Counted from the stretch's first letter, positions 33,733 through 58,311 are shown. The stretch is DNA of 62,940 bases from Ylistrum balloti (GCF_031769215.1 NW_026783079.1:1-62940), one strand, 5' to 3'. Notes: generated by a model not told the origin, from the letters alone. Made by a program: numbers and translations.

Positions 33733-34323
33733 ATGTCGAAAAGAAAACAGATTTTAAAGGTAGCTGCAGATCAATTTGCTGCTAAAGGTTTTGAAGGTGC
33801 TTCTTTGCGTTCTATTGCATCAGCAGTTGGTATCCAAGCAGCGTCGATTTTTTACCATTTTCCTGAAGGTAAGGAGCAGTTATATAGTGAGATTATTCAG
33901 CAAGTTATTGATAAAATTACAGAAGATGTGATTCAGTGGCAAAGTCGATCAGATAGTCCTGTAACGACAGTTGTAGAATTGTGTATACGTTTATGGGATT
34001 ATTTTTCCTATCAAGAGGCCGCCGCCGCGGTTATTTTACGTAATACTCTAGAGCCTCAGAATACTCGTAGTAAATGGGCTTTTGAACAGGTCTATCAGAT
34101 AACACAGCTTGCAGAATCTTTTATCGAGGCAGCACAGCAGCGTAAAGAGTTACGACAATTTAGTGCTTCTTCATTTATGTTTTGGGCCTGTAGTTATATT
34201 CTTAGTTTTCATGGTGCAGCCGGTATTCGGGAATCTATTTGGGGTGGCTCTCAGGAAAAAAATAACAAAAGTATCGCTAAAGAGCAGTTTATAACGGAAT
34301 TAACGTATTATCTTACACCTTGA
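33733..34323 (+). CDS. TetR/AcrR-family regulator
   Basis: N-terminal HTH: ILKVAADQFAAKGFEGASLRSIASAVGIQAASIFYHF. Confidence 0.92.
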   Translation: MSKRKQILKVAADQFAAKGFEGASLRSIASAVGIQAASIFYHFPEGKEQLYSEIIQQVIDKITEDVIQWQSRSDSPVTTVVELCIRLWDYFSYQEAAAAVILRNTLEPQNTRSKWAFEQVYQITQLAESFIEAAQQRKELRQFSASSFMFWACSYILSFHGAAGIRESIWGGSQEKNNKSIAKEQFITELTYYLTP

Positions 34324-34333: not shown

Positions 34334-35209
34334 TTATGTAAAAAGTTGTTGAATATAGTCTTCTGAAAAGCGTTTAATAGCATCTTGTTTTTTCTCTAAG
34401 TCGCCAAGAGGCGGAACGCCATACAGTAGCCAGGGGACTGTAACAACATCTGTAATACCAATATCGCGTTGTGCTTTGTAACCATCTAAACCAAATTGGT
34501 CAATACAAACAGCTTGAATCTCAAATGAATCCTTCTGGCGCCCACGATCGTTGAGCAACGTGTGTAATTTTTCGATGGTTTCTTTTAGCTCTACTAGCGT
34601 CATCATCGCTGACGTCCAGCCATTACCATAGGTTACAGCGCGTTTTAAAGCTGGTAAAGAATGTCCGCCAATATAAATAGGTACGTTCTCTGATGGAGCT
34701 GGGCGCATTTTGATGCGACCAATATCAAAAAAATCACCGTGATATTCAAACCAATCGCCTGTGAGTAGACCTTGAATAATTTCTAAAGATTCATTGACCC
34801 GTTTGCCACGCTGTTTAAATTCTGTACCACACCATTTAAATTCTTCTGGGAGCCAACCAATGCCAGCGCCAAACCCAAAGCGATTCTGACTTAAAACGGC
34901 AAGCGAACCTAATTGTTTTGCCAGTAAAACAGGATTTCGAACACCTACCTTGATGACGCTGCTATAAAAGCGAATATGTGTCGTTGCTGCTGCGAGACTG
35001 GCTGCAGCAATCAGTGGTGACACAAAAGGTGTATCTTCGGTCCACATGCGTTTGCCGTCTGATGTATAAGGGTAGGCGGCAGATACTTCTTCTGAATAAA
35101 AAATAGAATCAGGTAGTGCAATTGATGTAAAACCATATTCTTCAGCGGTTTTAGCAAGCTCAATGTAGTGCTCAGGATTGGTCATTGCTAGTGACATTGT
35201 AAATTTCAT
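34334..35209 (-). CDS. LLM-class, probably F420-dependent oxidoreductase
   Basis: AKTAEEYGF..I.LPD, RNPVLLAKQ, GAGIGWLPEEF, PIYIGGHS.PALKRA. Co-operonic with cofGH. Confidence 0.82.
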   Translation of the reverse strand: MKFTMSLAMTNPEHYIELAKTAEEYGFTSIALPDSIFYSEEVSAAYPYTSDGKRMWTEDTPFVSPLIAAASLAAATTHIRFYSSVIKVGVRNPVLLAKQLGSLAVLSQNRFGFGAGIGWLPEEFKWCGTEFKQRGKRVNESLEIIQGLLTGDWFEYHGDFFDIGRIKMRPAPSENVPIYIGGHSLPALKRAVTYGNGWTSAMMTLVELKETIEKLHTLLNDRGRQKDSFEIQAVCIDQFGLDGYKAQRDIGITDVVTVPWLLYGVPPLGDLEKKQDAIKRFSEDYIQQLFT

Positions 35210-35251
35210 GTTTATTTCACCTCTTGTCTCAATGTATCAATCTTAAATATG

Positions 35252-36523
35252 TTATAGGGCATTTTCAAATTTATATGTAAATGTTTGATCTGTTGTTAAT
35301 TCTTGATAGGACCCAAAAATTTCTTGTGGGTGTTCAAGTTGTGACAGTGGATCTTGCTCTATTTCTTGTTCCTCTAGAACGCGGCTAAATTGACGGTGTA
35401 TTTCGTAGGTCGTACGACGTTCGACTGGAACTCTACCCGCATCACGAATGGCATGACGTAACATTGCTGGTGTCATGAGCTGGCCGTGGCTTGCACCTGC
35501 TGTTGTTGAAATGCTTTCATTCATTAAGGTGCCACCTAGGTCATTGACACCACAATTAAGTAGCCAAGATGCCATCCGTAATCCCTCTTTGACCCAAGAG
35601 GCTTGAATGTTTTTAATCGTAGCCCCCAACATAAGGCGTGCAATGGCATACATTCGAATAATATCATTGCCTGTAGGGCCTGGTTGAACACCTGTAATGT
35701 CTTGTTTTATAAATAGGGGGGCTTCTTGATGGACAAAGGATAAGGGAACGAATTCTGTAAACCCTCCTGTCTGTTTTTGAATATCTCGAAGCAGCGCCAT
35801 ATGCGCAGCACGTTCCTCTTTGGTTTCTACATGACCAAACATCATCGTTGATGTTGTCGGGATACCAAGCTTATGAGCTGTGGTAACAATTTGGATCCAC
35901 TCTTGTGTTGAAATACGACCAGGAGAAATACGTTTGCGCAGTGTATCATTTAAGATTTCTGCAGACGTACCTGGTAGAGAACCAATGCCAGCATCTTTTA
36001 GGGCTGATAAATAGTCGTAAAATGTGCGTTTCGAACGAATGGCACCATACTTTACCTCTTCTGGAGAAAAGGCATGTAAATGCAGTTTAGGTAGGGCTTG
36101 GTGCAACTCACGGCACAAATCAATATAGATTTCTCCGTCAATAGATGGTGCTAAACCTGCTTGTAAGCAGACTTCGGTTGCACCATAGGAGAGGGCTTCT
36201 TGAGCACGGCGAATAATTTCATCTGTCGGTAAAAAATAGCCTTCTTCTGAACGTAAATCTCGAGAAAATGCACAAAATTGACAGGTCTTGATACATACAT
36301 TGGTGAAATTGATATTTCGGTTGACCACATAGCTAACTTGATCTCCACACTGAAGTTCTCTGAGGTAATCTGCTGTTAGTACTAATGCTGTTAACTCAGG
36401 ACCTGTTACTGAAAACAGTGTAGTAGCATCGTCTTGCTTGAGTTCCTTACCTTCTAAGCAATGCTCAAGAATCGTACGGATGTTAGGTGTTATTGTTTGT
36501 AAAACGGATTGTAAATCTGTCAT
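35252..36523 (-). CDS. cofH: FO synthase subunit CofH
   Basis: NRNINFTNVC..TC.FC, LHLHAFSPEE, PGTSAEIL, TSTMMFGHVET, NIQASWVK, NDLGGTLMNESIS. Start taken as ATG 36523, just after the cofG stop. Confidence 0.92.
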   Translation of the reverse strand: MTDLQSVLQTITPNIRTILEHCLEGKELKQDDATTLFSVTGPELTALVLTADYLRELQCGDQVSYVVNRNINFTNVCIKTCQFCAFSRDLRSEEGYFLPTDEIIRRAQEALSYGATEVCLQAGLAPSIDGEIYIDLCRELHQALPKLHLHAFSPEEVKYGAIRSKRTFYDYLSALKDAGIGSLPGTSAEILNDTLRKRISPGRISTQEWIQIVTTAHKLGIPTTSTMMFGHVETKEERAAHMALLRDIQKQTGGFTEFVPLSFVHQEAPLFIKQDITGVQPGPTGNDIIRMYAIARLMLGATIKNIQASWVKEGLRMASWLLNCGVNDLGGTLMNESISTTAGASHGQLMTPAMLRHAIRDAGRVPVERRTTYEIHRQFSRVLEEQEIEQDPLSQLEHPQEIFGSYQELTTDQTFTYKFENAL

Positions 36524-36527
36524 ATCT

Positions 36528-37688
36528 TTAAGCTGCGGGCCTACCCATTTTTTGGGGTGGTACATCGAATAAGGTTTGTAATCGATAGGACTGTTTTTGG
36601 ACGTGTTCATGTAGGCTAGCATCTAACCATGTTGACGTCATATAACGTTCATATATCGGGAGACGTGGTTTAAGAGAAAACCCCATTTCTTGACACAGGT
36701 TACGTAGATGGTCAATCATTGGCCAGGGATGCGTATGATTAATATAATCTGGTGTTACTGGGGAAATACCGCCGAAATCATTAATACCAGCTGCAATTAA
36801 TGTTTGTATCGTGCTGGGATTTAAATTGGGTGGGGCCTGTACACTAATCTCGTCCTCTAAGATGAGGCGCGCAACTGCTACTGTCCAGGCAATATCCTGA
36901 GCATTAGGTTCTGGATATTCAGACATCGGTGTTGTTTCTTTGGCACGAAAGTTTTGGACAATGACCTCTTGAATATGACCGTAAGCACGGTGTAAGTCAC
37001 GAATAGCTAAGAGTGTGTCAATACGTTCCTGACGTGTCTCACCGATACCAATAAGTAAGCCCGATGTGAACGGAATACGTAGTTCTCCTGCTTGTTGTGT
37101 CATGTGTAGCCGGCGATCAGGGTGTTTATCTTTAGCACGATAATGGGGCATGCCTTTGCTGCAAAGTCTTAAGCTAACATTTTCTAGCATTAACCCTAAA
37201 CTAACATTGACTTCGCGTAGCTTCACCATATCGTCTTTTTTTAGGATGCCTGCATTTGTATGGGGCAGGAGGTTATGTGCTAATGCCTCTTTTGCTGACC
37301 AGTAGAGATAGTCAACCGTTGATTCAAACCCCCAGTTATGAAGTAACTTGGCATAGCTTTTAAATGTTGTTTCCGGTGTGTCTCCTAGACAAAGTAGGGC
37401 TTCTATACAGTTGTTTTCTTGTCCTTGTTGCAGGGCTGCTGTGATTTCACTGGGTGTCATTGTCCACTCTCCAACTTGTCCTGGAGAGCGCCGAAAAGAA
37501 CAATAGTCACAAAAGTTACGGCATAAATTTGTTACAGGTAAAAAGACTTTTGGTGAAAAGGTTAGTGTTTTTCCCCAGTAAGCTGTTCTACGTTTAGCTG
37601 CAGCGGTAAACAACTCTACTAAGTGTTTTTCTTTTACACCAGTTAAATCGTAAGCTGTCTCTTTAGAAATAGGACTTGAGAGATCCAT
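36528..37688 (-). CDS. cofG: FO synthase subunit CofG
   Basis: TFSPKVFLPVTNLCRNFCDYC, LPHTNAG, SLGLMLE, HIQEVIVQNFRAK, QAPPNL, NDFGGISP. Confidence 0.92.
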   Translation of the reverse strand: MDLSSPISKETAYDLTGVKEKHLVELFTAAAKRRTAYWGKTLTFSPKVFLPVTNLCRNFCDYCSFRRSPGQVGEWTMTPSEITAALQQGQENNCIEALLCLGDTPETTFKSYAKLLHNWGFESTVDYLYWSAKEALAHNLLPHTNAGILKKDDMVKLREVNVSLGLMLENVSLRLCSKGMPHYRAKDKHPDRRLHMTQQAGELRIPFTSGLLIGIGETRQERIDTLLAIRDLHRAYGHIQEVIVQNFRAKETTPMSEYPEPNAQDIAWTVAVARLILEDEISVQAPPNLNPSTIQTLIAAGINDFGGISPVTPDYINHTHPWPMIDHLRNLCQEMGFSLKPRLPIYERYMTSTWLDASLHEHVQKQSYRLQTLFDVPPQKMGRPAA

Positions 37689-37753
37689 ATTCGGTAAATC
37701 TTTCTAAAAATATCAGGGCAAACAGTAGCGAAGTATTAAGTAACCCTCATATC

Positions 37754-38563
37754 TTACGTATCTTTTTTAACAGATGCATCTGTTAAATTTTGTTCTACAT
37801 TTGCTGCGTCTAAAAATGCAGGACGCTCGCCAGCACCATGGGCAGTAATGCTGGTTCCACTTAGATAGCTGGCAGCATCTGAAGCTAAGTAAAGGCAAAT
37901 GCCTGCAATGTCTTGAGGTAGAGCTAAACGGCCTAGTGGTACAGTTGCAGCGACAGCGGCAATACCGTCTTCATCACCATAATGAAGATGAGATTGTTCT
38001 GTCAAAATCATGCCGGCTGTAATGGCATTGACTCTAACTTTAGGAGCCCATTCTACTGCCAACGATTGTGTTAAATTGAGTAAACCTGCTTTGGCTGCGC
38101 CATAAATTGCTGTACCTGGGGAAGGGCGCGTGCCGCTAACACTAGCGATATTGATAATACTTCCACCGTTTTCCTGTTGTTGCATCAAGGTATTTGCTGC
38201 TTGAGCACAGTAGAGTGGCCCAAGCAAATTTAAGGCAACAATTTTTTCAGAAAACCGTGGCGACATATCATCTGCTAAGGCAAAAGGTGTGCCTCCTGCA
38301 TTATTAATGAGGACATCTAAACGTTCGTAACGGTCTTTTATTTGTTGAATCGCTGATTCTATTTGTTGTGAGTCACGTACGTCCATGGCAATAAACGCTG
38401 CTTGGTTATCGCCAAAACTTGGTAGAGTTTCGGGCTTATTACGGCCGCTAACGATAACCGTTGCACCAGCCTGTAAGAATGCTTCAGCAATACCACGTCC
38501 AACACCTTTTGTACCGCCTGTGACCAAGATAACCTTAGCTGAGAAATCAAAATGGATGGTCAT
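37754..38563 (-). CDS. Short-chain dehydrogenase, resembling the mycobacterial steroid-cluster SDR Rv3549c
   Basis: TGGTKGVG, NNAGG, YGAAKAG, EWAPKVRVNAI, ATVPLGRLA. Confidence 0.85.
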   Translation of the reverse strand: MTIHFDFSAKVILVTGGTKGVGRGIAEAFLQAGATVIVSGRNKPETLPSFGDNQAAFIAMDVRDSQQIESAIQQIKDRYERLDVLINNAGGTPFALADDMSPRFSEKIVALNLLGPLYCAQAANTLMQQQENGGSIINIASVSGTRPSPGTAIYGAAKAGLLNLTQSLAVEWAPKVRVNAITAGMILTEQSHLHYGDEDGIAAVAATVPLGRLALPQDIAGICLYLASDAASYLSGTSITAHGAGERPAFLDAANVEQNLTDASVKKDT

Positions 38564-38570: not shown

Positions 38571-39059
38571 CTACGAGTTTCCTACCGTGTGGTAAGCACG
38601 GCGATAGTAAATAAGTGGTTGTTGCGTATCATCTGCAGCTGCTTCAATAACACGACCAATCGCAATGCAGTGGTCACCTTGAATGATAAGGTCATGAACG
38701 TCACAGGCCAGATAAGCCGCGCAATCAGGGATAATGGGTTGGTCATTTGTCGTTAACTTGCCTGCATACCCATCAAAATCTGGTGTTGGTTCGCGCCCGG
38801 GACGTGCAAAACTATTGGATATCTCTTCCTGTCCATGGGCTAAAATACTAACGGCAAATTGCTGAGATTCTTTTATCATTGATGGCAATCGGTTGGTACT
38901 AGCGAGACAAACAAGGACTAAAGGCGGTTCTAAGGAAAGTGAACTAAAGCTTGAAGCTGTCAGGCCATACATGTTGCCATCTAATTTTGTGCTGACAACT
39001 GTAACTCCTGATGCCCAAGAGGCGAGTGCTTGTTTAAATGCGTCTTGAATGGAAGCCAT
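38571..39059 (-). CDS. hsaB: Flavin reductase (HsaB-like partner of HsaA)
   Basis: FKQALASWASGVTVV, GLTASSFSSLSLEPPLV, GDH, PLIYYR. Confidence 0.7.
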   Translation of the reverse strand: MASIQDAFKQALASWASGVTVVSTKLDGNMYGLTASSFSSLSLEPPLVLVCLASTNRLPSMIKESQQFAVSILAHGQEEISNSFARPGREPTPDFDGYAGKLTTNDQPIIPDCAAYLACDVHDLIIQGDHCIAIGRVIEAAADDTQQPLIYYRRAYHTVGNS

Positions 39060-39065: not shown

Positions 39066-40208
39066 TTAATATCCTTTTAGTGTTGCTAAGCGGTTTTTAT
39101 GCCAGGCAGCATCGCCAAATAGGGTAGCTGCTGCACGAGCCCGTTTAAAGTAAAACCCAATATCATATTCATCTGTCACACCAACACCACCATGCATTTG
39201 GATACCTTCACTGGTAATTCGTTCAAAGGTGTCAGTCATTTTTGCTTTTGCTAGAGAGGCGAAGAGTGCAAGATCTTGATTTTTATTTCCCGCTGCTGCA
39301 GCTGCTGTTAAAACCGCAGATCGTGCTAAGGATAGATCTACAAATAGGCGCGCAGCCCGATGTTGTAATGCCTGAAAGGCTCCAATTGGCTGGTCAAATT
39401 GCTGGCGTTCTTTTAAATAATCCAGTGTTAAATCAAAAGCTGCTTGTGCAGCCCCCAGCATCTCAGCCGATAGTGCAATCGTTGCGAGATCAAAAATAGG
39501 GTCAAGTAGCGTTGCTGCCTCATTTTCTGACCCTAAACGTGCGCTCTCTTTTACGATTATATTTGTACATTCGATGATGGCGGTATTGCGGCCATCAATT
39601 TGGTGCTGCCTGGTTACCTTTAGGCCCGTCTGATCTTTTGGGACAAGAAATAGTGTCAGACCATCGCGGTCTTGAGTCTGGCCACCTGTGCGAAATAACA
39701 TAATATAGGTATCACTTATATGGCCGTCTAAAACGTGTGTTTTACGGCCGTTTAGCGTGTAGGTATCCCCTTCACGTTTGGCAGTCGCCTCAATATGGTA
39801 GCGATTATAGTGACTTTCTTGTTCTTGGTGGGCAAGGGTTATGATCAGGTTGCCGGTAGCAAGTTTTGGCAGGAATTCTTGACACAGCGTTTTATTGCCA
39901 GCCATTTTTAAGAGTTCCGTTGCTAGAATAGTCGTTGATAAAAGGGGCTCTGGCATTAATTTACTACCAGTCGCTTCTAAGAGTAAGCAAACTTCAAAAA
40001 AACTTAAATCTGCGCCACCATAGGTTTCCGGAATTGCCAGTCCTAAAAAGCCTAACTCTGCTAATTGTTGCCAAAGTTTTGGGTCATAGCCTGGTAAACT
40101 GCGGTCGTCACGGTAACGTCGTAGCGCCTCAATATCTACTTGCTCTTGAACAATTTTGGTGATGGTTTCAACAAGTAATTTTTGTTCTGTTGTTAATATC
40201 GTGTTCAT
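39066..40208 (-). CDS. Acyl-CoA dehydrogenase (likely beta subunit of a heteromeric pair)
   Basis: WQQLAELG, YLKERQQFDQPIGAFQALQHR, QMHGGVGVTDEY. Confidence 0.88.
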   Translation of the reverse strand: MNTILTTEQKLLVETITKIVQEQVDIEALRRYRDDRSLPGYDPKLWQQLAELGFLGLAIPETYGGADLSFFEVCLLLEATGSKLMPEPLLSTTILATELLKMAGNKTLCQEFLPKLATGNLIITLAHQEQESHYNRYHIEATAKREGDTYTLNGRKTHVLDGHISDTYIMLFRTGGQTQDRDGLTLFLVPKDQTGLKVTRQHQIDGRNTAIIECTNIIVKESARLGSENEAATLLDPIFDLATIALSAEMLGAAQAAFDLTLDYLKERQQFDQPIGAFQALQHRAARLFVDLSLARSAVLTAAAAAGNKNQDLALFASLAKAKMTDTFERITSEGIQMHGGVGVTDEYDIGFYFKRARAAATLFGDAAWHKNRLATLKGY

Positions 40209-40215: not shown

Positions 40216-41412
40216 TTATACCGACGGTAACCCTAAAACACGTTTGGCAATAATATTAAGCTGAATTTCTGAACTGCCACCTTCAATTGTACTGGCGCGG
40301 CTGCGTAACCAATCTCGTGTTGTCGCCTGTTCTTCGTCTGTAAATCCAGGACCTTCCCAACCTAGTGCTTGTGGGCCTGCGATTCGTGTTGCTAGATCAA
40401 AACGACGTTGTTTGAGTTCGCTGCCACATAATTTTAAGATTGAGCTTTCAGGGCCTGGTGCGGCACCTGCTGCCAACGTTTGCTGAATACGCTCGGTGGT
40501 TAAACCGTAGCACATTTCATCAATAGCGTAGTTGACAATGTCGCAGCGCAAAAACGGATCTTTCAGTGGGCCTTGTGGCGTATTTTGGTAGGTACGGGTA
40601 GCTTCAACGAGCTTCATTTCAGTACCAGTAAGTTGGGTACCAATAGATTTGCCAATCGTTGTACGCTCATAGCCTAGTAAGGCTTTTGCAACTTGCCAAC
40701 CGCTGTTTACCTGACCAACTATATTGTTGACATTAGCTGTCGCGTTATCTAAGAAAACTTCGCAAAAAGGTGAACTACCGCTAATCAAGGGAATCGGGCG
40801 TACAGAGATAGCATCTTGCAACATGTCAACCAAGATAAAGGTGATACCTGCTTGTTTTTTAACGGTTTTATCTGTACGGGTTAAACAGAAAATCCAGTCA
40901 GATTTATCGGCGTGGGAGGTCCAAACTTTTTGCCCGTTGATGATGACCTTATCGCCATCAATCTCAGCTGTTGTTTGCAAGCCAGCTAGATCAGAACCAG
41001 CTCCTGGTTCTGAATAACCTTGACACCAGCGGGTTTCGCCAGAAACAATTTTTGGTAAATGTTCTTTTTTTTGGGTTTCTGTACCGTAATCAAGTAGGGT
41101 TGGTCCAATCATCACCAGGCCAAAGCCCACAAGCGGTGGTGGTACTTTAAGACGCTCTAATTCTTGTTCAAGAATCTCTGCTTCATCGTGTGTTAAACCG
41201 CCTCCACCATACATGGTTGGCCAAGTTGGTGCTGTAAAGCCTTTTTCGAGACTCACCTCAAACCAGCGTTTGACGTCCGCTTCAGGCTCTGGGTGCAAGC
41301 GGCCGCCCCAAAAGCCGTCAAAGCGGCCTTTGCGTGTGCCATAAAGAGACTGCGGCACATTCGCTTTTAGCCAAGCTTGCAGGTCTTTACGAAATAGATC
41401 TAAATTGGCCAT
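40216..41412 (-). CDS. Acyl-CoA dehydrogenase (likely catalytic alpha subunit)
   Basis: WCQGYSEPGAGSDLA, NGQKVWTS, TIEGGSSEIQLNIIAKRVLGLP. Confidence 0.9.
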   Translation of the reverse strand: MANLDLFRKDLQAWLKANVPQSLYGTRKGRFDGFWGGRLHPEPEADVKRWFEVSLEKGFTAPTWPTMYGGGGLTHDEAEILEQELERLKVPPPLVGFGLVMIGPTLLDYGTETQKKEHLPKIVSGETRWCQGYSEPGAGSDLAGLQTTAEIDGDKVIINGQKVWTSHADKSDWIFCLTRTDKTVKKQAGITFILVDMLQDAISVRPIPLISGSSPFCEVFLDNATANVNNIVGQVNSGWQVAKALLGYERTTIGKSIGTQLTGTEMKLVEATRTYQNTPQGPLKDPFLRCDIVNYAIDEMCYGLTTERIQQTLAAGAAPGPESSILKLCGSELKQRRFDLATRIAGPQALGWEGPGFTDEEQATTRDWLRSRASTIEGGSSEIQLNIIAKRVLGLPSV

Positions 41413-41421: not shown

Positions 41422-42420
41422 TTAAGCAGGTGCTCTGTTAGACGTTGGAGCTGTCGAAGCTTCGGAATAAAACTGTTTATACCATTTGCGTAATTTCATA
41501 ACAGGGCCGTCGTCACCGCATAAAAGTGGCACATCACGGTAACATTTGTTTTCCCAAATTTCGATATCTTCTAGAAAACCTGTGGTTAAGTTATCAATAT
41601 ACCCCTTAGAAAAGCTTTCGGTCTGTTTTGGGTCAGTACCTTTTTTGAGCATGACACCAAAGCGTAAATCTAAGCTATTTGCGTCGACCATTGTATGGGC
41701 ATTGATTAAGCGGCTTTCTAAGAAACCATTCATCACAGAAATTTGAAAGCCAGGGCCGTAATACGTTGCTGTTAGGTCGAAATAATCCTTACCGCCACCA
41801 CGGGGGTAAGCAACCCCTTTGTTATATTGAATCGCTTTATGCTCATTAAAATCATTGGAAAATTCTTCAATAATTGTGCCATGTACAGGTGCAAAATGGG
41901 CAATATCAACAACATTTTCGACGATTTCACGAGAATGGGTCTTGATATGAATTTTACTATGTTCCCAGTAGGTCCATTCTTCGGATTCAGATTCTGGCAG
42001 TAGTGGAATTTCAAAATCAGGTGCCTTGCCTTCGGGGTCAAACCAAAGGAAGATAACACCATTTTTTTCTTGTAACAGCCAAGTTGTTGTCCAAGAGCCA
42101 CTTGCTGCTCGTTTTGGGATATCTTGGCAATAAGGTATTTCTGTACACTCGCCTTGTCCATTAAACCGCCAAGAATGAAATGGGCATTCTAGGGTGTCTT
42201 CAATTACTTTGCCTTTACCTAAGTCCATCCCTAAATGTGGGCAATAGGCATCAATGACATGAAGGTCTCCAGATTGACCGCGAAAACAAACCAGCCGATG
42301 GCCAAAATAGGTCATCGATTTGACGTCCCCAGGTTGATATTCATTGGAAAACCCAATTACAAACCAACCGCGAGGAAATCCCTCTATACGATCTTTACGT
42401 CGTTCTGTACGTTGTTCCAT
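41422..42420 (-). CDS. kshA: Rieske oxygenase, 3-ketosteroid 9-alpha-hydroxylase KshA-like
   Basis: FPRGWF, Rieske CPH..CPFH, mononuclear-iron ENVVDIAHFAPVH, DIEIWENK, DGPVMKLRKWYKQFY. Steroid-cluster context. Confidence 0.7.
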   Translation of the reverse strand: MEQRTERRKDRIEGFPRGWFVIGFSNEYQPGDVKSMTYFGHRLVCFRGQSGDLHVIDAYCPHLGMDLGKGKVIEDTLECPFHSWRFNGQGECTEIPYCQDIPKRAASGSWTTTWLLQEKNGVIFLWFDPEGKAPDFEIPLLPESESEEWTYWEHSKIHIKTHSREIVENVVDIAHFAPVHGTIIEEFSNDFNEHKAIQYNKGVAYPRGGGKDYFDLTATYYGPGFQISVMNGFLESRLINAHTMVDANSLDLRFGVMLKKGTDPKQTESFSKGYIDNLTTGFLEDIEIWENKCYRDVPLLCGDDGPVMKLRKWYKQFYSEASTAPTSNRAPA

Positions 42421-42427: not shown

Positions 42428-42622
42428 TTACGACTCTTCTAAACGGATTGCTGCCCGTGGGCAATTTGCAACAGCTGATTCAAGCTGTTCACGTAGGGAT
42501 TCATCGGGATTTTCATTTAGAACGGTTAACGTGTCGTCTTCTTCTACGCGAAAAATCTCGGGTGCGATTTGTTCGCAAATGGCATTTGCTTCACAGGAAT
42601 CATAATCTATGATAATTTTCAT
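42428..42622 (-). CDS. Small [3Fe-4S]-type ferredoxin
   Basis: CEANAIC...CP (CxxNxxC, with Asn at the second Cys position). Confidence 0.88.
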   Translation of the reverse strand: MKIIIDYDSCEANAICEQIAPEIFRVEEDDTLTVLNENPDESLREQLESAVANCPRAAIRLEES

Positions 42623-43257
42623 GCAGCCTCCTCACTAGTCTGTTGTGGGCGTAACGATAAACCATGACGTTCTTCTAAATGTGCAGCGATTTTGTTGGCT
42701 AACTCTTCTGCTGCTGGCACAAGTGCTGGTTCGATCATCGCATTGACCATCGGTCCCATCGGGCCGCCAGCTTCCATGGCCAATGTAAAGGTTAGCTCTG
42801 TGGCATTATCTTGAATTTCAGAAGCGTCAAGTTGTTTGCGTTCTGTTGTTTCATTAAACCGTTTAAATAACAAGCGAAATAACCAAATCATAAAACGTTT
42901 GATGAGGCCTAGGCGCTTTGGGGCTTTGTTTTGTTCTGATGATTCTGTTTGTGTTGGGGGGGCACCGTAAGGGTACATTGTGAACTCGCCATTACCCTCA
43001 AGAGGCTCGGAGACGCCTTTTAAGGTAAAAGTTACTTTTTCTGGGCCTTGCCACTCTGTAATGTGTACTGCAAACTCAATGGTGCGTTGTAAAATGCCCA
43101 CATCTCCTTTGAGTGTCCAGGTCGAATCGGTCTCTGATTGCACCTCATGGCTTTGGTAGCCGGTTACAAAGGGTGCCCAGTTATTCATATCCTGGACAAA
43201 ATCCCAGATTTTGTCGCGATCTAAGTTTAGAACGGTACTGTATGTTGCCGCAGGCAC
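42619..43257 (-). CDS. SRPBCC/CoxG-family ligand-binding protein
   Basis: IWDFVQDMNNWAPFVTGY. GTG start overlaps the upstream TAG (TAGTG). Confidence 0.75.
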   Translation of the reverse strand: MPAATYSTVLNLDRDKIWDFVQDMNNWAPFVTGYQSHEVQSETDSTWTLKGDVGILQRTIEFAVHITEWQGPEKVTFTLKGVSEPLEGNGEFTMYPYGAPPTQTESSEQNKAPKRLGLIKRFMIWLFRLLFKRFNETTERKQLDASEIQDNATELTFTLAMEAGGPMGPMVNAMIEPALVPAAEELANKIAAHLEERHGLSLRPQQTSEEAA

Positions 43258-44918
43258 TAGAGAATGCCACACATATGTTGTGCCGCAACGTAGCCCCACG
43301 TCATATTACGTAAGTTCGACAGGCCACTTTGGTAGCCAGCCCCGGTATCTAGAGGTGCTGCCGCATTACCACAGGCATACAGGCCTTCAATCCCATGACC
43401 ACGTACATGTTGTACTTGGCCAGTGGCTGTGGTTTTCAGACCAACACAGTTGACACCAACACCAACTGGAATCAGCTTAATACCGTAATAAGGTGCTTTA
43501 TTGAGTGGGCCCATATTGGGGTTAGGGCGATCACGGTCACCAATAAACTTGGCAGCCCAAGGATAGGTGCCACGACCAAAGTCTGGATCTGTTTCACCAT
43601 CAGCAAAGCTGTTAAAGCGTTCTAGCGTTTCAACAAAATTATCGGCATCAATCCCCAGTTTTTCTGCTAATTCCCGCGGCGTGTCGGCTTTGACAATCAT
43701 TTCATCTGGGATTTGCATACCGGGTAAAAAGGTGGCAAAGCTATATTTTTCGCGGTAATTGCTATCAAAAATAAGGTAGGGGGGGTAGTTGGTATGTTGT
43801 TGTTTGACCCCGTCCCAGCCATGGACTTTCGGTAAGTATTCACGGTAGAAGGATTCGTCACAGAACCGCTTGCCTTCATCGTTGACCCAAATGGCATGGG
43901 GGTAACCGCCTTCCCATGAAGCGCGGCATAGTGGGTGCCCATCGTGTTCTTCACCAGGGATGGTATAGCCAAAAAACATACCTAAGTTATAGCTTGGTAC
44001 GCCACCAAGGGATGCGCCAACTTCACCACCAAGGACAATGTTATCGCCATGTAGATGAGGCTGACACATCGATTTCCATTCTGGCAGTCCTTCAAATTGA
44101 ATCGCCATTTCTTCATTCCAGTCATAGCCACCCACACCAAGCAGTACACCTTTATTTGCTTTGACAAAAAAGTCATTGCCATCAGCAGCTTCGGCGCGTA
44201 CGCCAATGACGCGACTGCCTTCTGTAATGAGTTCTCGCACGGGAGTTTCGACAAACGCTTGTGCGTTTGTGCGGTCAATCAGCGCTGCTTTGACGAAATA
44301 GCCCATCATACCCGGGCCCATCCCCCGTTGATCCGCACCAATTTGTTTGCCCATATGAGCAAAATCCCATTTGGTAACACAGGAAACACTGCCCCATTCA
44401 AACAAGGTGTCATGGTTGATGCCGGGCGGCATATGTGGGGTTAAATAGGTCTTTTTTTGCCATTCTTTTAGGTCAGGGCCATTAAAGAGTTCAACTTCTA
44501 GGTAGCGGCCTTCTGCAAGGGTACCTGGTGCATGGGGGTAATGGTAATCGGGAAAGCCTTTGATGGTTTTCCAGGCAATACCGGCTTTTTCGCCTAAATA
44601 CTCTGCTGCTTCACGGCCTTTATCAAATAAAATACGTTGTAGGGCTTTGTTGGCATAACCGCCAGCTAAGAAATCTAAATAGGCAAAGGCTTCTGTTTCG
44701 TTATCTTCTGTGCCCTCGGCAAGCATTTTGTAATTGCAGGGGACAAAGACCTCACCACCAGAGTAGGCACACACACCGCCTAATTTGGGGGCTTTTTCTA
44801 AGATTGCCACCTTTAGACCATTGTCCTGGGCAACGATTGCTGCACTCATGGCTCCTAAACCGGAACCGGCAATGACAACATCGACTTCTAAATTCCACTG
44901 TGCGGGTGCTGTGGCCAT
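43257..44918 (-). CDS. FAD-dependent 3-ketosteroid dehydrogenase-like (KstD/delta4 family)
   Basis: IAGSGLGA, EKAPKLGG..AYSGG, PDYHYP, DPDFGRG, GLYACGN. Confidence 0.75.
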   Translation of the reverse strand: MATAPAQWNLEVDVVIAGSGLGAMSAAIVAQDNGLKVAILEKAPKLGGVCAYSGGEVFVPCNYKMLAEGTEDNETEAFAYLDFLAGGYANKALQRILFDKGREAAEYLGEKAGIAWKTIKGFPDYHYPHAPGTLAEGRYLEVELFNGPDLKEWQKKTYLTPHMPPGINHDTLFEWGSVSCVTKWDFAHMGKQIGADQRGMGPGMMGYFVKAALIDRTNAQAFVETPVRELITEGSRVIGVRAEAADGNDFFVKANKGVLLGVGGYDWNEEMAIQFEGLPEWKSMCQPHLHGDNIVLGGEVGASLGGVPSYNLGMFFGYTIPGEEHDGHPLCRASWEGGYPHAIWVNDEGKRFCDESFYREYLPKVHGWDGVKQQHTNYPPYLIFDSNYREKYSFATFLPGMQIPDEMIVKADTPRELAEKLGIDADNFVETLERFNSFADGETDPDFGRGTYPWAAKFIGDRDRPNPNMGPLNKAPYYGIKLIPVGVGVNCVGLKTTATGQVQHVRGHGIEGLYACGNAAAPLDTGAGYQSGLSNLRNMTWGYVAAQHMCGIL

Positions 44919-44960: not shown

Positions 44961-44989
44961 ATAATAGAACACGTTTCACTGCGCTGCAA
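44961..44989 (-). promoter_or_regulatory. Sigma70-like promoter of the leftward steroid operon
   Basis: Minus strand TTGCAG-N17-TATTAT. SD AGGAG at 44932-44928. Confidence 0.55.
44965..44978. promoter_or_regulatory. KstR-type operator, left
   Basis: TAGAACACGTTTCA matches TnnAACnnGTTnnA exactly and overlaps the spacer and -10 of the promoter above. Confidence 0.72.
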
Positions 44990-47421: not shown

Positions 47422-47435
47422 TAGAACGTGTTTCA
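47422..47435. promoter_or_regulatory. KstR-type operator, right
   Basis: TAGAACGTGTTTCA matches TnnAACnnGTTnnA, 61 bp before the hsaA start. An extra TAGAAC half-site lies at 47416-47421. Confidence 0.72.
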
Positions 47436-47496
47436 TATTTGGGATATTCTAAATACATAAAGAATTTGACAAATAAACATAATGAGGTCTGCAAAG

Positions 47497-48696
47497 ATGG
47501 CTGTAGCTGCACACACGTTAAATATTCCAACTCATGATGAACTTGTTTCCCGTGCACGAGATCTGGCGCCAAAGCTAAAAGAGCGGGCAGAGGCCGCAGA
47601 GGCTGCACGCTGTGTGCCTGAGCAAACGGTCGCAGAAATGCAAGAAGCTGGTTTTTTTCAGGTGCTACAGCCCAAAAAATGGGGCGGGTATGAGTGTGAA
47701 CCACGTACTTTTTTTGATATCCAAATGGAACTGGCGCGGGCCTGTCCATCAACAGCCTGGATTTATGGTGTTATTGGTATTCATCAATGGCAGATGGCTT
47801 TATTTCCTGAAGAGACACAACAAGAGGTTTGGGGAGAGGATCCTCGTGTACTGATTTCTTCCTCCTATATGCCTGTTGGTAAGGTCGAGCATACCGATGG
47901 TGGTGTGATTTTAAGTGGTCGTTGGGGGTTTTCTAGTGGCTGTGATCATTGTCAGTGGGTGTTTGTTGGTGGTTTTATTCCACCTAAAGATGGTGAAGGC
48001 TATCCTGATATGGTGACTTTTTTGGTACCACGTAGCGATTATGACTTTGATGATGACTGGCATGTCTCTGGTTTAAAAGCGACAGGTAGTAAGACGGTTA
48101 TTGTTGATAAAAAGTTTGTGCCTTGGCGTCGAATTCATAAATTTAGTGATGGATTTAAACAAGATAGCCCCGGTCATGCGGTTAATGATGCACCGCTATT
48201 TCGTCTCCCTTTTGGGCAAATTTTTGTTCGGGCGGTTTCTACAGGGACTATTGGGATGTTACAAGGTGCGTTAGATACCTACATCGAGGTGCAAAAGGAC
48301 CGTGTCCAACGTGGTAATGGTGAAGCCGTCTCTCAGCAAGCAAATGCGCAACAGGCGGTTGCTCATGCTGCAGCAACAATTGATATGTTAAAGCTCATAC
48401 TCTACCGCAGTTTTGATGAAATGATGGATTATGTGAGGCGCGGTGAAAAGATACCTGTTGAGCGTCGTGTTCATTTTCGTTATCAGTCCGCGTTGGTTGT
48501 TGAGTCTTGCTTAGAGGCTGCGACGAAATTATTAAACGAAAGTGGCGGTTCTGGGATCTTTTTAACCAATCCAATCAATAGCTATTTTCAAGATATACGT
48601 GCCGCGCGCGGACATTATGCCAATAATATGGATAAGCCTGGTAAAAACTTAGGTAGTGTCTTAATGGGCTTAAAAAATACAGATTTCTTTATTTAA
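47497..48696 (+). CDS. hsaA: Flavin-dependent monooxygenase oxygenase, HsaA-like
   Basis: AGFFQVLQPKKWGGYE, ACPSTAWIYGV, GRWGFSSGCDH, WHVSGLKATGS, FQDIRAARGH. Confidence 0.82.
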   Translation: MAVAAHTLNIPTHDELVSRARDLAPKLKERAEAAEAARCVPEQTVAEMQEAGFFQVLQPKKWGGYECEPRTFFDIQMELARACPSTAWIYGVIGIHQWQMALFPEETQQEVWGEDPRVLISSSYMPVGKVEHTDGGVILSGRWGFSSGCDHCQWVFVGGFIPPKDGEGYPDMVTFLVPRSDYDFDDDWHVSGLKATGSKTVIVDKKFVPWRRIHKFSDGFKQDSPGHAVNDAPLFRLPFGQIFVRAVSTGTIGMLQGALDTYIEVQKDRVQRGNGEAVSQQANAQQAVAHAAATIDMLKLILYRSFDEMMDYVRRGEKIPVERRVHFRYQSALVVESCLEAATKLLNESGGSGIFLTNPINSYFQDIRAARGHYANNMDKPGKNLGSVLMGLKNTDFFI

Positions 48697-48719
48697 ACGT
48701 AATCTAAAGGCCTCTAATA

Positions 48720-49631
48720 ATGACTGAAATTAAACAACTAGGCTACCTTGGTTTTGAGGTTGCCGATCTGAAAGCCTGGGAGCATTTTACAACCGACGTT
48801 CTTGGGTTAGGGCAAAGCCAACACTTTGCAAATGGTGGCTTTGCGCTACGTCTAGACGAATATCAACAACGTTTTATCATTCAGCCAGGTCAGGCAGATG
48901 ATCTTGTTTGTGTTGGCTTAGAAGTTGAAAATAAGGAAGCACTGACAGCGGTAATTTCTCGTGTACAGGCTGCGGGAATTGCTGTAGGCGAGGGCGACAG
49001 CAAACTGGTCGAGCAACGCCAAGTTGAGGCATTAACAACCTTTAAAGAGCCTGGTGGTGTGCAGTTTGAGGTATATTATGGGCCGCAAATGGCGGCGGAG
49101 CCATTTCAGTCGCAGGTGGTGGCTCATGGTTTTAAAGCTGGTGCCCTTGGTCTCGGTCATTTTGTTTTACGGGCTGGTGATTTAGAAGCATCACTAAAGT
49201 TTGTGACGGATGTTTTAGGATTTCGCTTAAGTGATCGTATTATTTGTGATATTGGTGGTTATCATGTCAATATTGCTTTTACGCACTGTAATCCACGGCA
49301 TCATTCGCTGGCCCTTGGAGAGAAATTGCCTAAACATATCCATCATTTTATGCTTGAAGTCAATGATATTGATGATGTCGGCCAGTGTTGGGACCGTGTT
49401 GTCAATGAAGGAATCACGGTTTGGAATGCTATTGGCCGGCATCCCAATGATCGTATGCTATCTTTTTATGCAGAAACCCCGTCAGGCTTTCAATTTGAAT
49501 TTGGTTGGGGGGGACGTGAAATTTTAGATGATGATACTTGGGATACTTATGTTTATGATCGTATTAGCGATTGGGGGCATGAACATCCAGCTCAAATGTT
49601 TAAGAAGATGTTTAAAAAACAGAAATCGTAG
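48720..49631 (+). CDS. hsaC: Extradiol (meta-cleavage) dioxygenase, HsaC/BphC-like
   Basis: LGYLGFE, LGLGHFVL, CNPRHHSLA, HHFMLEV, GRHPNDRMLSFY..TPSGFQFEFG. Confidence 0.8.
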   Translation: MTEIKQLGYLGFEVADLKAWEHFTTDVLGLGQSQHFANGGFALRLDEYQQRFIIQPGQADDLVCVGLEVENKEALTAVISRVQAAGIAVGEGDSKLVEQRQVEALTTFKEPGGVQFEVYYGPQMAAEPFQSQVVAHGFKAGALGLGHFVLRAGDLEASLKFVTDVLGFRLSDRIICDIGGYHVNIAFTHCNPRHHSLALGEKLPKHIHHFMLEVNDIDDVGQCWDRVVNEGITVWNAIGRHPNDRMLSFYAETPSGFQFEFGWGGREILDDDTWDTYVYDRISDWGHEHPAQMFKKMFKKQKS

Positions 49632-49675
49632 CAGCGCATTACCAACAAATAGACTAGGAAAATTAGAGACAAACA

Positions 49676-50515
49676 ATGACTGTAGTAGCCGCAGTGCCAG
49701 AAGGCAAATACGTTGATATTTTTGACGGTCACAAAATCCATTACCACGAAGCCGGTGAGGGCTTTCCTGTTATTTTTATTCATGGTAGTGGGCCTGGAGC
49801 CAGTGGTTGGAGTAACTTTAAAGGCAATTATGAAACCATTGCAAATTTAGCTAACTGTCGTTGCTTTGTGCCTGATTTGCTCGGGTATGGCTATTCTTCG
49901 ATGCCAGAAGAAGCGACCTTTACCTACGACGATTTAAAAAACGGTATTCAAGAATTTGCGAAGCAACTAGGGCTTAAGGAATATGCACTCGTTGGCAACT
50001 CGATGGGCGGCGCAATTGCGATTACCTTAGCACTAGAATGTCCTGAGCAGGTCAAGCAGTTAATTTTAATGGCACCTGGCGGCTTAGAAGCTAAAGAAGT
50101 TTATATGGAGATGAAAGGTATACGTACAATGATTCGGGCCATGTATGCGCCAGAAGGTATTACCCGTGAGTCGATGCGTAAAGTTTTTTCTCTACAATTG
50201 CATGACGCCAGTTTGATCACCGATGACATTATCGAAGAGCGGTTTCAGATTGCAGAGCAGCAGCCAAGAGGTATGTTCGAGAAAGTTATTGTTCCCAACC
50301 AAGCAGGTCAGCTTGCTGAGTTACAAATGCCTATTTTAGGGTTTTGGGGCGTAGATGATCAATTTTGTCCTGTTAGTGGTGCGATGATTGTTGCCAAAGA
50401 AGCTAGCCAAACGAAAATGACGATGCTAACAGAATGTGGACACTGGGTGATGGTGGAACATGAAGCGTACTTTAATCAGCAATGCGCAGATTTTGTGCGG
50501 CAAGAGACGGTGTAA
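49676..50515 (+). CDS. hsaD: Meta-cleavage product hydrolase, HsaD/BphD-like
   Basis: HGSGPGASGWSNF, GNSMGG, CGHWVMVE. Confidence 0.8.
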   Translation: MTVVAAVPEGKYVDIFDGHKIHYHEAGEGFPVIFIHGSGPGASGWSNFKGNYETIANLANCRCFVPDLLGYGYSSMPEEATFTYDDLKNGIQEFAKQLGLKEYALVGNSMGGAIAITLALECPEQVKQLILMAPGGLEAKEVYMEMKGIRTMIRAMYAPEGITRESMRKVFSLQLHDASLITDDIIEERFQIAEQQPRGMFEKVIVPNQAGQLAELQMPILGFWGVDDQFCPVSGAMIVAKEASQTKMTMLTECGHWVMVEHEAYFNQQCADFVRQETV

Positions 50516-50520
50516 AGACG

Positions 50521-51324
50521 ATGGCCCTAACAGAAGATAAAATTCGTTTTTATGGAGATGCCTTGTTTCAGGCATTACAAACACGCACAACCCTAAAGCC
50601 GCTGACCTCACAAGATAACTTAACCGTCGATGATGCCTATGCCATCTCTAAACATATGATTGCTTGTCGTGTCGAGGCCGGCGAGCGCATTATTGGAAAA
50701 AAAATTGGTGTTACCAGTGCACCTGTGCAAGATATGCTGAATGTTCGTACACCGGACTTTGGGTTTTTAACCGATGCAATGCACTATGAGCAAGGTCAAG
50801 AGATGCCCATTAGCAGTAACCTGATTCAGCCCCGCGCTGAGGGTGAATTGGCGTTTCGTTTGGCTAAAGATTTAACGGGTCCGGGTATTACGGCAGAAGA
50901 TGTACTGGCTGCTACCGATAGTGTCATGCCTTGTTTTGAAGTTGTTGATTCACGCATTGATAATTGGCAAATCAAGTATGAGGATACCGTTGCTGATAAT
51001 GCTTCTTCGGGGTTATACATTGTCGGAGAGCCTGTTTCTCCGCGTGGCATTGATTTGGCGACAGCTGAGATGGTTGTTGAAAAAAACGGCCAATTTCTAA
51101 GCCGTGGTAGTGGGGTTGAGGCTTTAACTGGAGAGCCAAAACTGGGCACACCTGTTAATTGTGTTGCTTGGCTTGCAAATACACTTGGTCATTATGGTAT
51201 TGAGTTACAGGCAGGAGATGTTATTCTTTCTGGTTCACTTGTTCCCCTAGAGCCTGTTGTATCCGGAGACCATATGCAGGTCACTATTGCTGGAGTTGGT
51301 ACATTGGGTGTACAGTTTGTCTGA
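50521..51324 (+). CDS. hsaE: 2-hydroxy-dienoate hydratase (HsaE/MhpD)
   Basis: GKKIGVTS, PDFGFLTD, QPRAEGE, EVVDSRI, VADNAS, ILSGSLVP. Confidence 0.82.
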   Translation: MALTEDKIRFYGDALFQALQTRTTLKPLTSQDNLTVDDAYAISKHMIACRVEAGERIIGKKIGVTSAPVQDMLNVRTPDFGFLTDAMHYEQGQEMPISSNLIQPRAEGELAFRLAKDLTGPGITAEDVLAATDSVMPCFEVVDSRIDNWQIKYEDTVADNASSGLYIVGEPVSPRGIDLATAEMVVEKNGQFLSRGSGVEALTGEPKLGTPVNCVAWLANTLGHYGIELQAGDVILSGSLVPLEPVVSGDHMQVTIAGVGTLGVQFV

Positions 51325-51481
51325 AAATATGAAGTATGTATATAGAGGCCTGATGAGTTGCTTTACTGCTACGCAGCCTTCGAGGATGTTTATTATATTG
51401 ATCTCGGAATTGCTTTGTAGTAAGACAAATAATCACCCTTATTTTTGTAGATGAATGAAAGTTGATTAAAGGTATGTTTTT

Positions 51482-52360
51482 ATGACAAAAATTAAAGCTG
51501 CTATTATCGGTTCCGGTAATATTGGTACAGATCTTTTATATAAAATGCAGCGTAGTGAAATACTCGAGCCTGCTTGGATGGTTGGTATTGATCCAGATTC
51601 TGATGGATTAAAGCGCGCTGCTGGTATGGGGTTAAAAACGACCTACGAAGGTGTTGATGGGCTTGTACCTCATATTCAGGATGACCAAATTCGGATTGCT
51701 TTTGATGCAACATCTGCTTATGTTCATGCAGAAAACTCACGCAAGGTCAATGAGCAAGGTGTTGTGATGGTTGACCTTACGCCTGCAGCGATTGGTCCCT
51801 ATTGTATTCCACCAGTGAACTTACAAGAACAAGTTGGTTCTAAGGTTATGAATATTAATATGGTGACCTGTGGTGGACAGGCTACGATTCCAATGGTTTA
51901 TGCGGTTAGTCGTGTACAACCAGTTGCTTACGGGGAAATCGTCGCAACGGTTTCCTCAAAATCTGCTGGTCCGGGTACACGTAAAAATATTGATGAGTTT
52001 ACGCGTACAACTGCAGGAGCTGTCGAGAAATTAGGTGGGGCGAAACAAGGTAAAGCGATTATTATCATTAATCCTGCAGAACCACCACTGATTATGCGTG
52101 ATACGATTCATTGTTTAACCGAAGAAGAGCCAGATCAAGCAGCGATTACTCAGTCTGTGCATGACATGATTGCGGCAGTGCAGCAATATGTTCCTGGTTA
52201 CACCCTAAAAAATGGCCCCGTTTTTGATGGCAAACGCGTTTCAATTTTTTTAGAGGTTGAAGGCTTAGGCGATTATTTACCTAAATATGCAGGTAACCTT
52301 GATATTATGACAGCTGCGGCTTTGCAAGCTGGTGAACTTTTTGCCAAAGAAATGTCATAA
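51482..52360 (+). CDS. hsaG: Acylating aldehyde dehydrogenase (HsaG/MhpF/DmpF)
   Basis: [53 protein letters not shown]. Confidence 0.88.
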
Positions 52361-52433
52361 AGACTGTAAAACCAAGATATAAATTCAGATTATTATTTGG
52401 AATTGTTGAAAAAATATAAAAAGTGAGACTGAT

Positions 52434-53465: not shown

Positions 53466-53478
53466 ACGGTAGTTATCT

Positions 53479-55197: not shown

Positions 55198-55674
55198 ATG
55201 ACGATATCTGATTTAATTCAAGCACCGCTACAGTTTGATTTGTCCTGCACACTTGCAGCCACCCCAGATGAGGTTTTTACATTTATTACAGATTTTGAGG
55301 GAATGCCAGGTTGGATGCCACTGATGAAGCGTGTTGAGGTTGATAATACAAAGGCACAGGCACCTGGTGAAGTTGGAGCTGTACGGGTCATTTATCCACC
55401 AGTTGGTAGCGCTACCTATGAAGAAGTACGCGTTTTTGAACGCCCAAATCTACTGGCCTATAGTGCTAGCGATGACTCTTTAATGGGGATGTATACAAAC
55501 CATATCGGCGTTTTAACTTGTGAAGCTACAGGGGAAGAGCATACGCTATTTTCCTGGCGTACCTACGCTGATCCCGGTAAAAATGTGATTATGCGCTTTT
55601 TTGGGCGTTTGGTGTTTGGCTATGTTTTTCGTCATAGCTTTAAGAAATTAAAGCAGCGTTTTCCGGTTTCCTGA
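55198..55674 (+). CDS. SRPBCC (polyketide cyclase/START-like) protein
   Basis: PDEVFTFITD...PGW, GAVRVI. Confidence 0.75.
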   Translation: MTISDLIQAPLQFDLSCTLAATPDEVFTFITDFEGMPGWMPLMKRVEVDNTKAQAPGEVGAVRVIYPPVGSATYEEVRVFERPNLLAYSASDDSLMGMYTNHIGVLTCEATGEEHTLFSWRTYADPGKNVIMRFFGRLVFGYVFRHSFKKLKQRFPVS

Positions 55675-55704
55675 GTAGATATTGTTAATAAACTAGGAGC
55701 AGAC

Positions 55705-58289: not shown

Positions 58290-58311
58290 CGTAACAAGGA
58301 TTAGATCAACG

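Follow-up and report, generated by a model that had tools for sequence, protein, structure and literature searches.

Why are genes for making a deazaflavin placed at the end of an operon for degrading steroids? This question is raised by a DNA stretch of 62,940 nucleotides in the genome assembly of the scallop Ylistrum balloti (GCF_031769215.1 NW_026783079.1:1-62940), which was analyzed at its full length and is referred to here as the window. On its minus strand, four co-directional genes encode a short-chain dehydrogenase/reductase (SDR), the two predicted subunits of FO synthase (CofG and CofH), and a luciferase-like (LLM) oxidoreductase whose family is assigned to cofactor F420. An earlier note on this DNA had proposed that deazaflavin synthesis is co-induced with steroid catabolism, and that the LLM protein catalyzes an F420- or FO-dependent redox step on a steroid intermediate. 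Having compared the locus with its counterparts in other genomes, we consider it on balance probable that cofG, cofH and the TIGR03619-class LLM gene form a conserved 3′ module of a steroid operon headed by a KstR-type operator (a KstR box), and that this module ties the supply of FO and F420 to an F420-dependent LLM step on a steroid intermediate.

A predicted FO synthase closes a KstR-boxed steroid operon

The leftward operon begins with a gene for a KstD-like dehydrogenase, continues through those for an SRPBCC protein, the oxygenase KshA, two acyl-CoA dehydrogenase (ACAD) subunits and a flavin reductase, and ends with the SDR, cofG, cofH and LLM genes (Table 1). Coordinates, strand and family scores bear out the earlier note's description of the last four genes as a co-directional, closely spaced tail of this operon. 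Specifically, the gaps from kshA to the LLM gene measure 9, 7, 6, 7, 65, about 4 and 42 nucleotides (nt), the largest being that between the SDR gene and cofG, and a 198-nt gap lies ahead of kshA. The same note had named a promoter or terminator between cofG and the steroid genes as evidence that would break the link. No minus-strand terminator-like site was found in the intergenic gaps of the leftward run, whereas a promoter-like match does occur within the SDR gene and is weighed below. We infer that the run is co-transcribed.

CofG and CofH are predicted to be the two subunits of FO synthase, and the radical S-adenosylmethionine (SAM) motif CxxxCxxC is intact in both (CRNFCDYC in CofG and CIKTCQFC in CofH). 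The start of CofH is probably that given in Table 1, 4 nt past the cofG stop, because the alignments of its relatives begin at residues 22-39 of the longest open reading frame (ORF), which extends to 36622 and would overlap cofG by 95 nt. The closest relatives of CofG are found in Myxococcota metagenome-assembled genomes (MAGs) and in G001, a MAG labelled Dadabacteria that is described in the next section.

The window holds exactly two perfect TnnAACnnGTTnnA boxes, one ahead of each of two divergent steroid operons. When reverse-complemented, the box of the leftward operon (TAGAACACGTTTCA) is identical to the validated Mycobacterium tuberculosis Rv3545c/Rv3546 operator (PMC1995591). Of their 14 positions, the two boxes differ from each other at 2 alone, where the central dinucleotide is swapped. 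Although the chance expectation for perfect boxes in the window is also two, both lie in promoter regions and both are conserved in relatives, where KstR-type boxes occupy the KshA/HsaA intergenic regions. The first box likely overlaps the promoter of the leftward operon. No second operator was found inside the leftward run, and degenerate operators before cofG, the LLM gene or the neighboring TetR gene were rejected, as the 3-mismatch matches there barely exceed chance and fall in coding sequence.

The module recurs in relatives that carry the F420 pathway

The contig belongs to a marine bacterium that has not been cultured, and the named organisms closest to it are MAGs labelled Candidatus Dadabacteria. 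Two of its relatives, G001 and a second species of the same five-species phylum (G007), are the closest to the window organism by UvrD identity. The earlier note had suggested examining whether the linkage of cofG, cofH and the LLM gene to steroid genes is found in other genomes, and it recurs in both. On their overlapping contigs the order is KshA, ACAD-large, ACAD-small, flavin reductase, SDR, a second SDR (SDR2), CofG, CofH and LLM, and this run is divergent from hsaACD with KstR-type boxes in between. Most of the encoded proteins are 56-75% identical to those of the window, among them KshA (70-72%) and the SDR (66-67%), while ACAD-small ranges from 41 to 63%. The LLM orthologues are 71-76% identical to that of the window and come after cofH both in G001 and on a Logan contig (L010), the latter (76% identical) also retaining CofG, CofH and the convergent TetR gene; in G007 the orthologue opens another, short contig. 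Because the GC content of the relatives' loci is 57-65%, compared with 40% in the window, and both flanks differ, a KshA-to-LLM module with this level of identity has survived long divergence and local rearrangement.

FO is converted to F420 only with CofC, CofD and CofE. The earlier note was right that cofC, cofD and cofE are not in the window, and they are also absent across the whole scallop assembly. That absence says nothing about the bacterium, because the assembly is a host genome with no bacterial rpoB and a single LLM gene. The relatives are more informative. G001 has a cofE-cofD-cofC cluster on a separate contig, and G001 and G007 each carry cofG and cofH, cofD, the F420-NADPH oxidoreductase gene fno (scoring above cut-off), six LLMs, 5-6 KshA genes, an Ltp3-type gene and an LLM of the Rv3520c family. 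The window organism presumably encodes CofC, CofD, CofE and Fno as well.

Among the other three species of the phylum, no cofG, cofD, LLM orthologue or Rv3520c-family gene was found; one has a weak KshA-like match and another an unrelated LLM. Within these five species, therefore, the F420 genes are present all or none, and only in the members that bear steroid genes. The LLM orthologue itself is confined to the F420-capable genomes, being present in 2 of 2 cofD/cofG-positive species and 0 of 3 negative ones, a small sample. In both relatives, moreover, the Rv3520c-family LLM gene followed by fno forms the end of an operon of ACAD and SDR genes (G001:C225 and G007:C168, the latter with a thiolase gene as well). 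Taken with the cofG-cofH-LLM arrangement, this means that the genes for making FO and for reducing F420 each stand next to an LLM gene in a catabolic operon.

The LLM orthogroup belongs to steroid regulons of a second lineage

The orthogroup to which the window LLM belongs is large and tightly conserved (52-60% identity) in Pseudonocardiaceae and soil metagenomes, and its named members come from Actinomycetota. This phylum is known for F420. We surveyed 80 actinobacterial-type metagenome loci that carry the orthologue. The LLM gene directly follows an Ltp3-type gene in 44 of these, and has its own KstR box 22-59 nt upstream of its start in a further 20. Contig ends cut five loci, and 11 show neither feature, most of them with less than 450 nt upstream, so that 64 of the 75 informative loci have an Ltp3-type gene upstream or a KstR box of their own. 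In all, the 80 loci contain 107 KstR boxes, compared with 1.1 in shuffles. A SnoaL gene comes after the LLM gene in 54 of the 80, and KshA or HsaFG is often close by. A minority of the loci place the LLM gene beside MMPL and a sulfotransferase-SDR block, where it is still KstR-boxed.

The same context is seen in a cultured actinomycete, Kutzneria albida (CP007155). Here the LLM gene, whose product is 57% identical to that of the window and falls in the same NCBIfam family, is translationally coupled after genes for DUF35, an Ltp protein (PRK07937) and a thiolase-domain protein (PRK08313), and is followed by SnoaL. An Rv3520c-family LLM gene is divergent from the DUF35 gene across a KstR box identical to TAGAACGTGTTTCA, the second box of the window, and a further KstR box lies between a cytochrome P450 gene and a steroid 3-ketoacyl-CoA thiolase gene. 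By family score, the neighboring genes encode an Rv3520c-family LLM, lipid-transfer proteins and a steroid 3-ketoacyl-CoA thiolase.

According to a review, Ltp3 and Ltp4 remove the C24 branch from phytosterol side chains by an aldolytic reaction, in a route that has uncharacterized steps. In a quick tree of the LLM proteins, the orthologues of Dadabacteria-labelled MAGs form a clade that groups with two long-branch sequences.

Weighing the evidence

A number of observations weigh against the proposed link between deazaflavin supply and steroid catabolism. Neither cofG nor cofH is found near the LLM orthologue in any of the 80 actinobacterial-type loci, and of four F420-positive Myxococcota genomes none has the LLM orthologue, while two have KshA-like genes. 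Because these four genomes lack the orthologue, the link between an F420-type LLM and steroids would be accessory rather than universal. The three genomes that share the arrangement represent one lineage, so that it may count as a single evolutionary event. Internal promoters are possible, given a promoter-like match inside the SDR gene (38005-37976, 10 of 12 positions) and another just before the LLM gene (35268-35240), such matches being fewer overall than in shuffles. No RNA runs matching the stretch were found, nor were cofC, cofD, cofE or fno of the window organism in the assembly. Finally, when the LLM protein is compared with the Protein Data Bank (PDB) by phmmer, profile and Foldseek searches, the FMN enzymes SfnG, RutA and SsuD score level with the F420 enzymes Mer, FGD2 and Adf.

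One rival explanation is that cofG, cofH and the LLM gene are a separate housekeeping unit for general FO and F420 supply, whose position has been inherited in one lineage and has no tie to steroids. From kshA onward no gap exceeds the 65 nt that precede cofG, the 10/12 promoter-like site lies in the adjoining SDR gene, and no operator stands ahead of cofG. The three syntenic genomes are related, G001 and G007 have other potential users of F420 among their six LLMs each, and Myxococcota keep cofG-cofH pairs without steroid neighbors. A housekeeping unit accounts poorly, however, for the retention of the module with the SDR and flavin reductase genes through rearrangement of the flanks and a GC shift of about 20 points, or for the membership of the LLM orthogroup itself in KstR regulons of another lineage. 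It also leaves aside the restriction of F420 genes to the steroid-gene-bearing members of the phylum, the similar embedding of fno in a catabolic operon, and the lack of terminator-like sites in the gaps. We regard this explanation as unlikely.

A second question is the identity of the LLM cofactor. The gene has a strong Shine-Dalgarno sequence (AGAGGTGA) and encodes a conserved MKFT N-terminus, and the AlphaFold model of the protein reaches a confidence score (pLDDT) of 90. Assignment to the Rv3520c orthologues (TIGR03559) is ruled out by a score of 30.9 bits against a cut-off of 335. F420 is the predicted cofactor on the strength of the TIGR03619 score, the three next-best NCBIfam families, which are likewise F420-class, the phyletic pattern, and the adjacency of FO synthase. 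It could be argued instead that the protein works as a two-component monooxygenase dependent on FMNH2, which would be supplied by the flavin reductase whose gene lies four genes upstream in the same operon, and that it carries out a hydroxylation or Baeyer-Villiger-type oxidation of a steroid, with cofG and cofH as its neighbors for some other reason. The best PDB sequence and fold matches, which include MsuD in addition to the three FMN enzymes named above, offer this view scores equal to those of F420 enzymes. Set against it are the four best NCBIfam families, all F420-class and with TIGR03619 over its cut-off, while SfnG, the highest-scoring model of FMN type, gives 73 bits against a cut-off of 383. 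Published assignments of F420 to such LLM families are based on phylogenetic profiling and cofactor-site signatures, and here the named orthologues come from Actinomycetota and from cofD-carrying Dadabacteria-labelled MAGs, with FO synthase as the conserved neighbor. Moreover, the flavin reductase already has a likely role as the HsaB-equivalent partner of HsaA, as there is no hsaB in the rightward hsa operon. An FMN-dependent enzyme therefore seems decidedly improbable.

Least credible is the notion that the bacterium makes FO alone, for example as a photolyase antenna, and that the LLM protein uses FO or has nothing to do with deazaflavins: cofC, cofD and cofE are indeed nowhere in the assembly, but this holds essentially one contig of the bacterium (no rpoB, one LLM), both syntenic relatives have cofD and Fno, with the complete cofE-cofD-cofC set in G001, so that we give the notion very little weight.

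The coupling of FO and F420 supply to steroid catabolism that the earlier note had proposed is thus supported at the genomic level by synteny, pathway content, phyletic profile and the regulons of the LLM orthogroup, while its premise that the window is part of an ordinary bacterial genome, where cofC, cofD and cofE could be sought, fails, and with it the use of their absence as a refutation here; these genes are present in the syntenic relatives instead. Its other proposal, an F420-type LLM step within a steroid regulon, gains comparative support, and has a precedent in Rv3520c.

A model for deazaflavin-linked steroid degradation

If FO and F420 supply is coupled to steroid catabolism as proposed, the presence of a steroid would relieve repression and cause the ring-opening enzymes to be made. 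FO synthase, whose radical-SAM reaction is costly and commits the cell to deazaflavin synthesis, would be produced at the same time. CofC, CofD and CofE, whose genes would lie at other loci as they do in the two syntenic relatives, would then turn FO into F420, which Fno would cycle with NADPH. The LLM protein would use the F420/F420H2 couple for hydride transfer on a steroid intermediate, most likely interconverting an alcohol and a ketone, or reducing or oxidizing a C=C bond, in a side-chain or CoA-ester intermediate. A substrate of this kind is proposed because the actinobacterial orthologues sit in a DUF35-ltp4-ltp3 side-chain operon.

Comparison with known systems

The nearest known parallel is Rv3520c of M. 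tuberculosis, which lies downstream of a validated KstR operator and appears in a published list as an F420-dependent oxidoreductase for cholesterol degradation whose reaction is undefined. Like the window gene, it encodes an F420-assigned LLM in a steroid cluster behind a KstR operator, and it adjoins DUF35 and ltp genes. The two belong to different LLM subfamilies, however, and G001 and G007 have, at another locus next to fno, a gene that does belong to the Rv3520c family. The F420-type LLMs of the cholesterol regulon, Rv3520c among them, are not known to have been assigned a role in the years after 2007, when the KstR regulon was defined. To our knowledge, no F420 biosynthesis gene has been described in the KstR regulon of mycobacteria.

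The DUF35-ltp4-ltp3-LLM-SnoaL operon of actinobacteria such as K. albida shares with the window an orthologous LLM, the same type of operator, and nearby genes for P450, a FadA5-type thiolase, KshA and HsaFG. There the LLM gene lies between an Ltp3-type gene and SnoaL and FO synthase is encoded elsewhere, whereas in the lineage of the window the LLM gene follows cofH. G007 has a DUF35-ltp4-ltp3 operon of its own, which ends in other genes.

The cofG-cofH loci of Myxococcota resemble that of the window in their split, adjacent radical-SAM subunits (55-66% identity) and in the placement of cofC, cofD and cofE elsewhere. They were rejected as further instances of the arrangement, as neither steroid genes nor an LLM orthologue is present within 10 kb of them, and there is no such orthologue in the genomes. 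Another parallel is offered by Sterolibacterium denitrificans, in which SEDNCHOL_10763-10765 are listed as homologues of cofC, cofD and cofE adjoining steroid genes (PMC6678751). As far as this annotation list goes, F420-biosynthesis genes there stand beside those for ACS3, a steroid delta-isomerase, a hydratase, an SDR and ACADs; they represent the cofC/D/E half of the pathway rather than cofG/H, and the organism is an anaerobic betaproteobacterium. Apart from such list entries, we found no discussion of an F420 role for these three genes in the literature searched. The same literature contained no paper tying cofG or cofH to steroid catabolism, no connection of ltp3/ltp4 to F420 beyond gene lists, and none of this LLM orthogroup to ltp3/ltp4. 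Thus, steroid regulons that include an F420-type LLM are already known from Rv3520c, and what is new is the presence of predicted FO synthase genes embedded in a KstR-type steroid cluster outside Actinobacteria.

Other features of the contig

The coordinates of the main features are collected in Table 1. In G007, contig C33 has the same hsa gene order as the rightward operon of the window. Farther along that operon (56209-59091), genes for an isochorismatase-like protein and an OlsE-like FA_hydroxylase of the sterol-desaturase superfamily stand beside those for DUF35 and an Ltp-type thiolase. Directly after the steroid cluster is a gene for a small serine recombinase of the resolvase/invertase type (59141-59701), which may mark a mobile or invertible segment. 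Between the divergent operons lie genes for a 463-amino-acid LA2681-like HEPN protein (45010-46401) and an uncharacterized 170-amino-acid ORF (46754-47266); no homologues of either were seen in the kshA/hsaA spacers of G001 and G007, that of G007 being about 1.9 kb and unannotated.

Table 1. Coordinates, strand and supporting family matches of the features of the window
Feature	Coordinates	Strand	Support or remarks
TetR-family regulator	33733..34323	+	convergent with the LLM gene, 10-nt gap; sole TetR in the window
LLM oxidoreductase, TIGR03619 family, F420-class, last gene of the run	34334..35209	-	192.7 bits vs cut-off 166.9
Predicted CofH, FO synthase subunit 2, radical SAM	35252..36523	-	TIGR03551, 466.1 bits vs 374.1, full profile
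Predicted CofG, FO synthase subunit 1, radical SAM	36528..37688	-	TIGR03550, 429.6 bits vs 213.35, full profile
SDR oxidoreductase (PRK07856 equivalog)	37754..38563	-	390.6 bits vs cut-off 255
Flavin reductase	38571..39059	-	Pfam Flavin_Reduct; HpaC, HsaB and StyB models below cut-off
Acyl-CoA dehydrogenase, small (PimD/IpdE2-like) subunit	39066..40208	-	
Acyl-CoA dehydrogenase, large (PimC-like) subunit	40216..41412	-	
KshA-type Rieske 3-ketosteroid 9-alpha-hydroxylase oxygenase	41422..42420	-	Pfam KshA_C, 203.5 bits, plus Rieske
SRPBCC (CoxG/polyketide-cyclase-like) lipid-binding protein	42619..43299	-	
KstD-like FAD-dependent dehydrogenase, first leftward gene	43257..44918	-	Pfam FAD_binding_2; NCBIfam 3-ketosteroid-delta-1-dehydrogenase models, 310 bits, below cut-offs
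KstR-type operator (TAGAACACGTTTCA)	44965..44978	.	divergent promoter region; overlaps minus-strand promoter-like site 44990-44961
Second KstR-type operator (TAGAACGTGTTTCA)	47422..47435	.	47 nt upstream of hsaA
Rightward operon: hsaA, hsaC, hsaD, hsaE, hsaG, hsaF, kstD	47482..55194	+	
Rightward continuation: SRPBCC, DUF35 (ChsH2-type), isochorismatase-like, Ltp-type thiolase (PRK06059), FA_hydroxylase	55198..59091	+	

The TetR protein encoded next to the LLM gene was considered as a candidate for KstR or KstR2 and rejected, as only its helix-turn-helix region matches other TetRs, its best PDB matches do not include KstR, and KstR2 is matched with an E value of 5e-6. The KstR repressor may be encoded off the contig. 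L010 has a 51%-identical TetR orthologue in the same convergent position, followed by a gene for a PNPOx-like protein (L010 3322-3801); the window has an aldo/keto reductase gene at that place, and no counterpart of the PNPOx-like gene was seen. The PNPOx-like fold includes F420H2-dependent reductases. To the left of the aldo/keto reductase and TetR genes of the window are two paralogous genes for hybrid histidine kinase/response regulators (27214-29040 and 30666-32474), with genes for a pyridoxal phosphate-dependent enzyme and an Rrf2 regulator between them.

The window constitutes an entire bacterial contig, gene-dense and of about 40% GC, within a scallop assembly of 648.5 Mb and 1372 contigs. 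No bacterial rpoB was found across that assembly, which yielded eukaryotic polymerase fragments only, and the luciferase-like gene of the window is the only one in it. On these two grounds the bacterium appears to be represented by little beyond this isolated contig, and would be either a contaminant or an associate of the scallop. Housekeeping genes on the contig include those for ribosomal proteins S6, S18 and L9, GlmS, UvrD and LpxR. The best named relative of UvrD comes from a Candidatus Dadabacteria-labelled MAG (60% identity), all others being about 44% identical. A 156-amino-acid ORF (11575-12045) holds the S6 and S18 Pfam domains together, and is thus an apparent S6-S18 fusion. Contigs of about 250 nt from marine and macroalgal metagenomes match the SDR and flavin reductase genes of the window exactly or with one difference, which indicates that the organism is environmental; these contigs do not bridge gene junctions, and the two environmental DNA runs may share data.

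Implications

It is possible, though we put this forward tentatively, that F420 chemistry is a widespread and ancestral part of KstR-type sterol degradation, carried out through two LLM orthogroups (Rv3520c and the TIGR03619 subgroup discussed here) and probably serving the C24-branched Ltp3/Ltp4 route. In the Dadabacteria-labelled lineage, all of F420 metabolism would then be built into the operons for steroid and lipid catabolism and largely kept for that purpose, with FO synthase beside one LLM and Fno beside the other.

The locus provides unusually direct genomic evidence tying the deazaflavin itself, and not merely a look-alike enzyme, to steroid catabolism. In addition, the comparison brings out a second LLM orthogroup that is conserved widely. 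Its gene belongs to the ltp3/ltp4 side-chain operon in actinomycetes that can be cultured, K. albida for example, where the predicted reaction is accessible at the bench. Eukaryote-like sterol biosynthesis genes have been reported from bacteria labelled Dadabacteria, and a catabolic cluster in a related lineage is consistent with a sterol-centered biology. The findings would also extend the 9,10-seco type of aerobic steroid degradation, together with KstR-type operators and the use of F420, to a little-known marine lineage.

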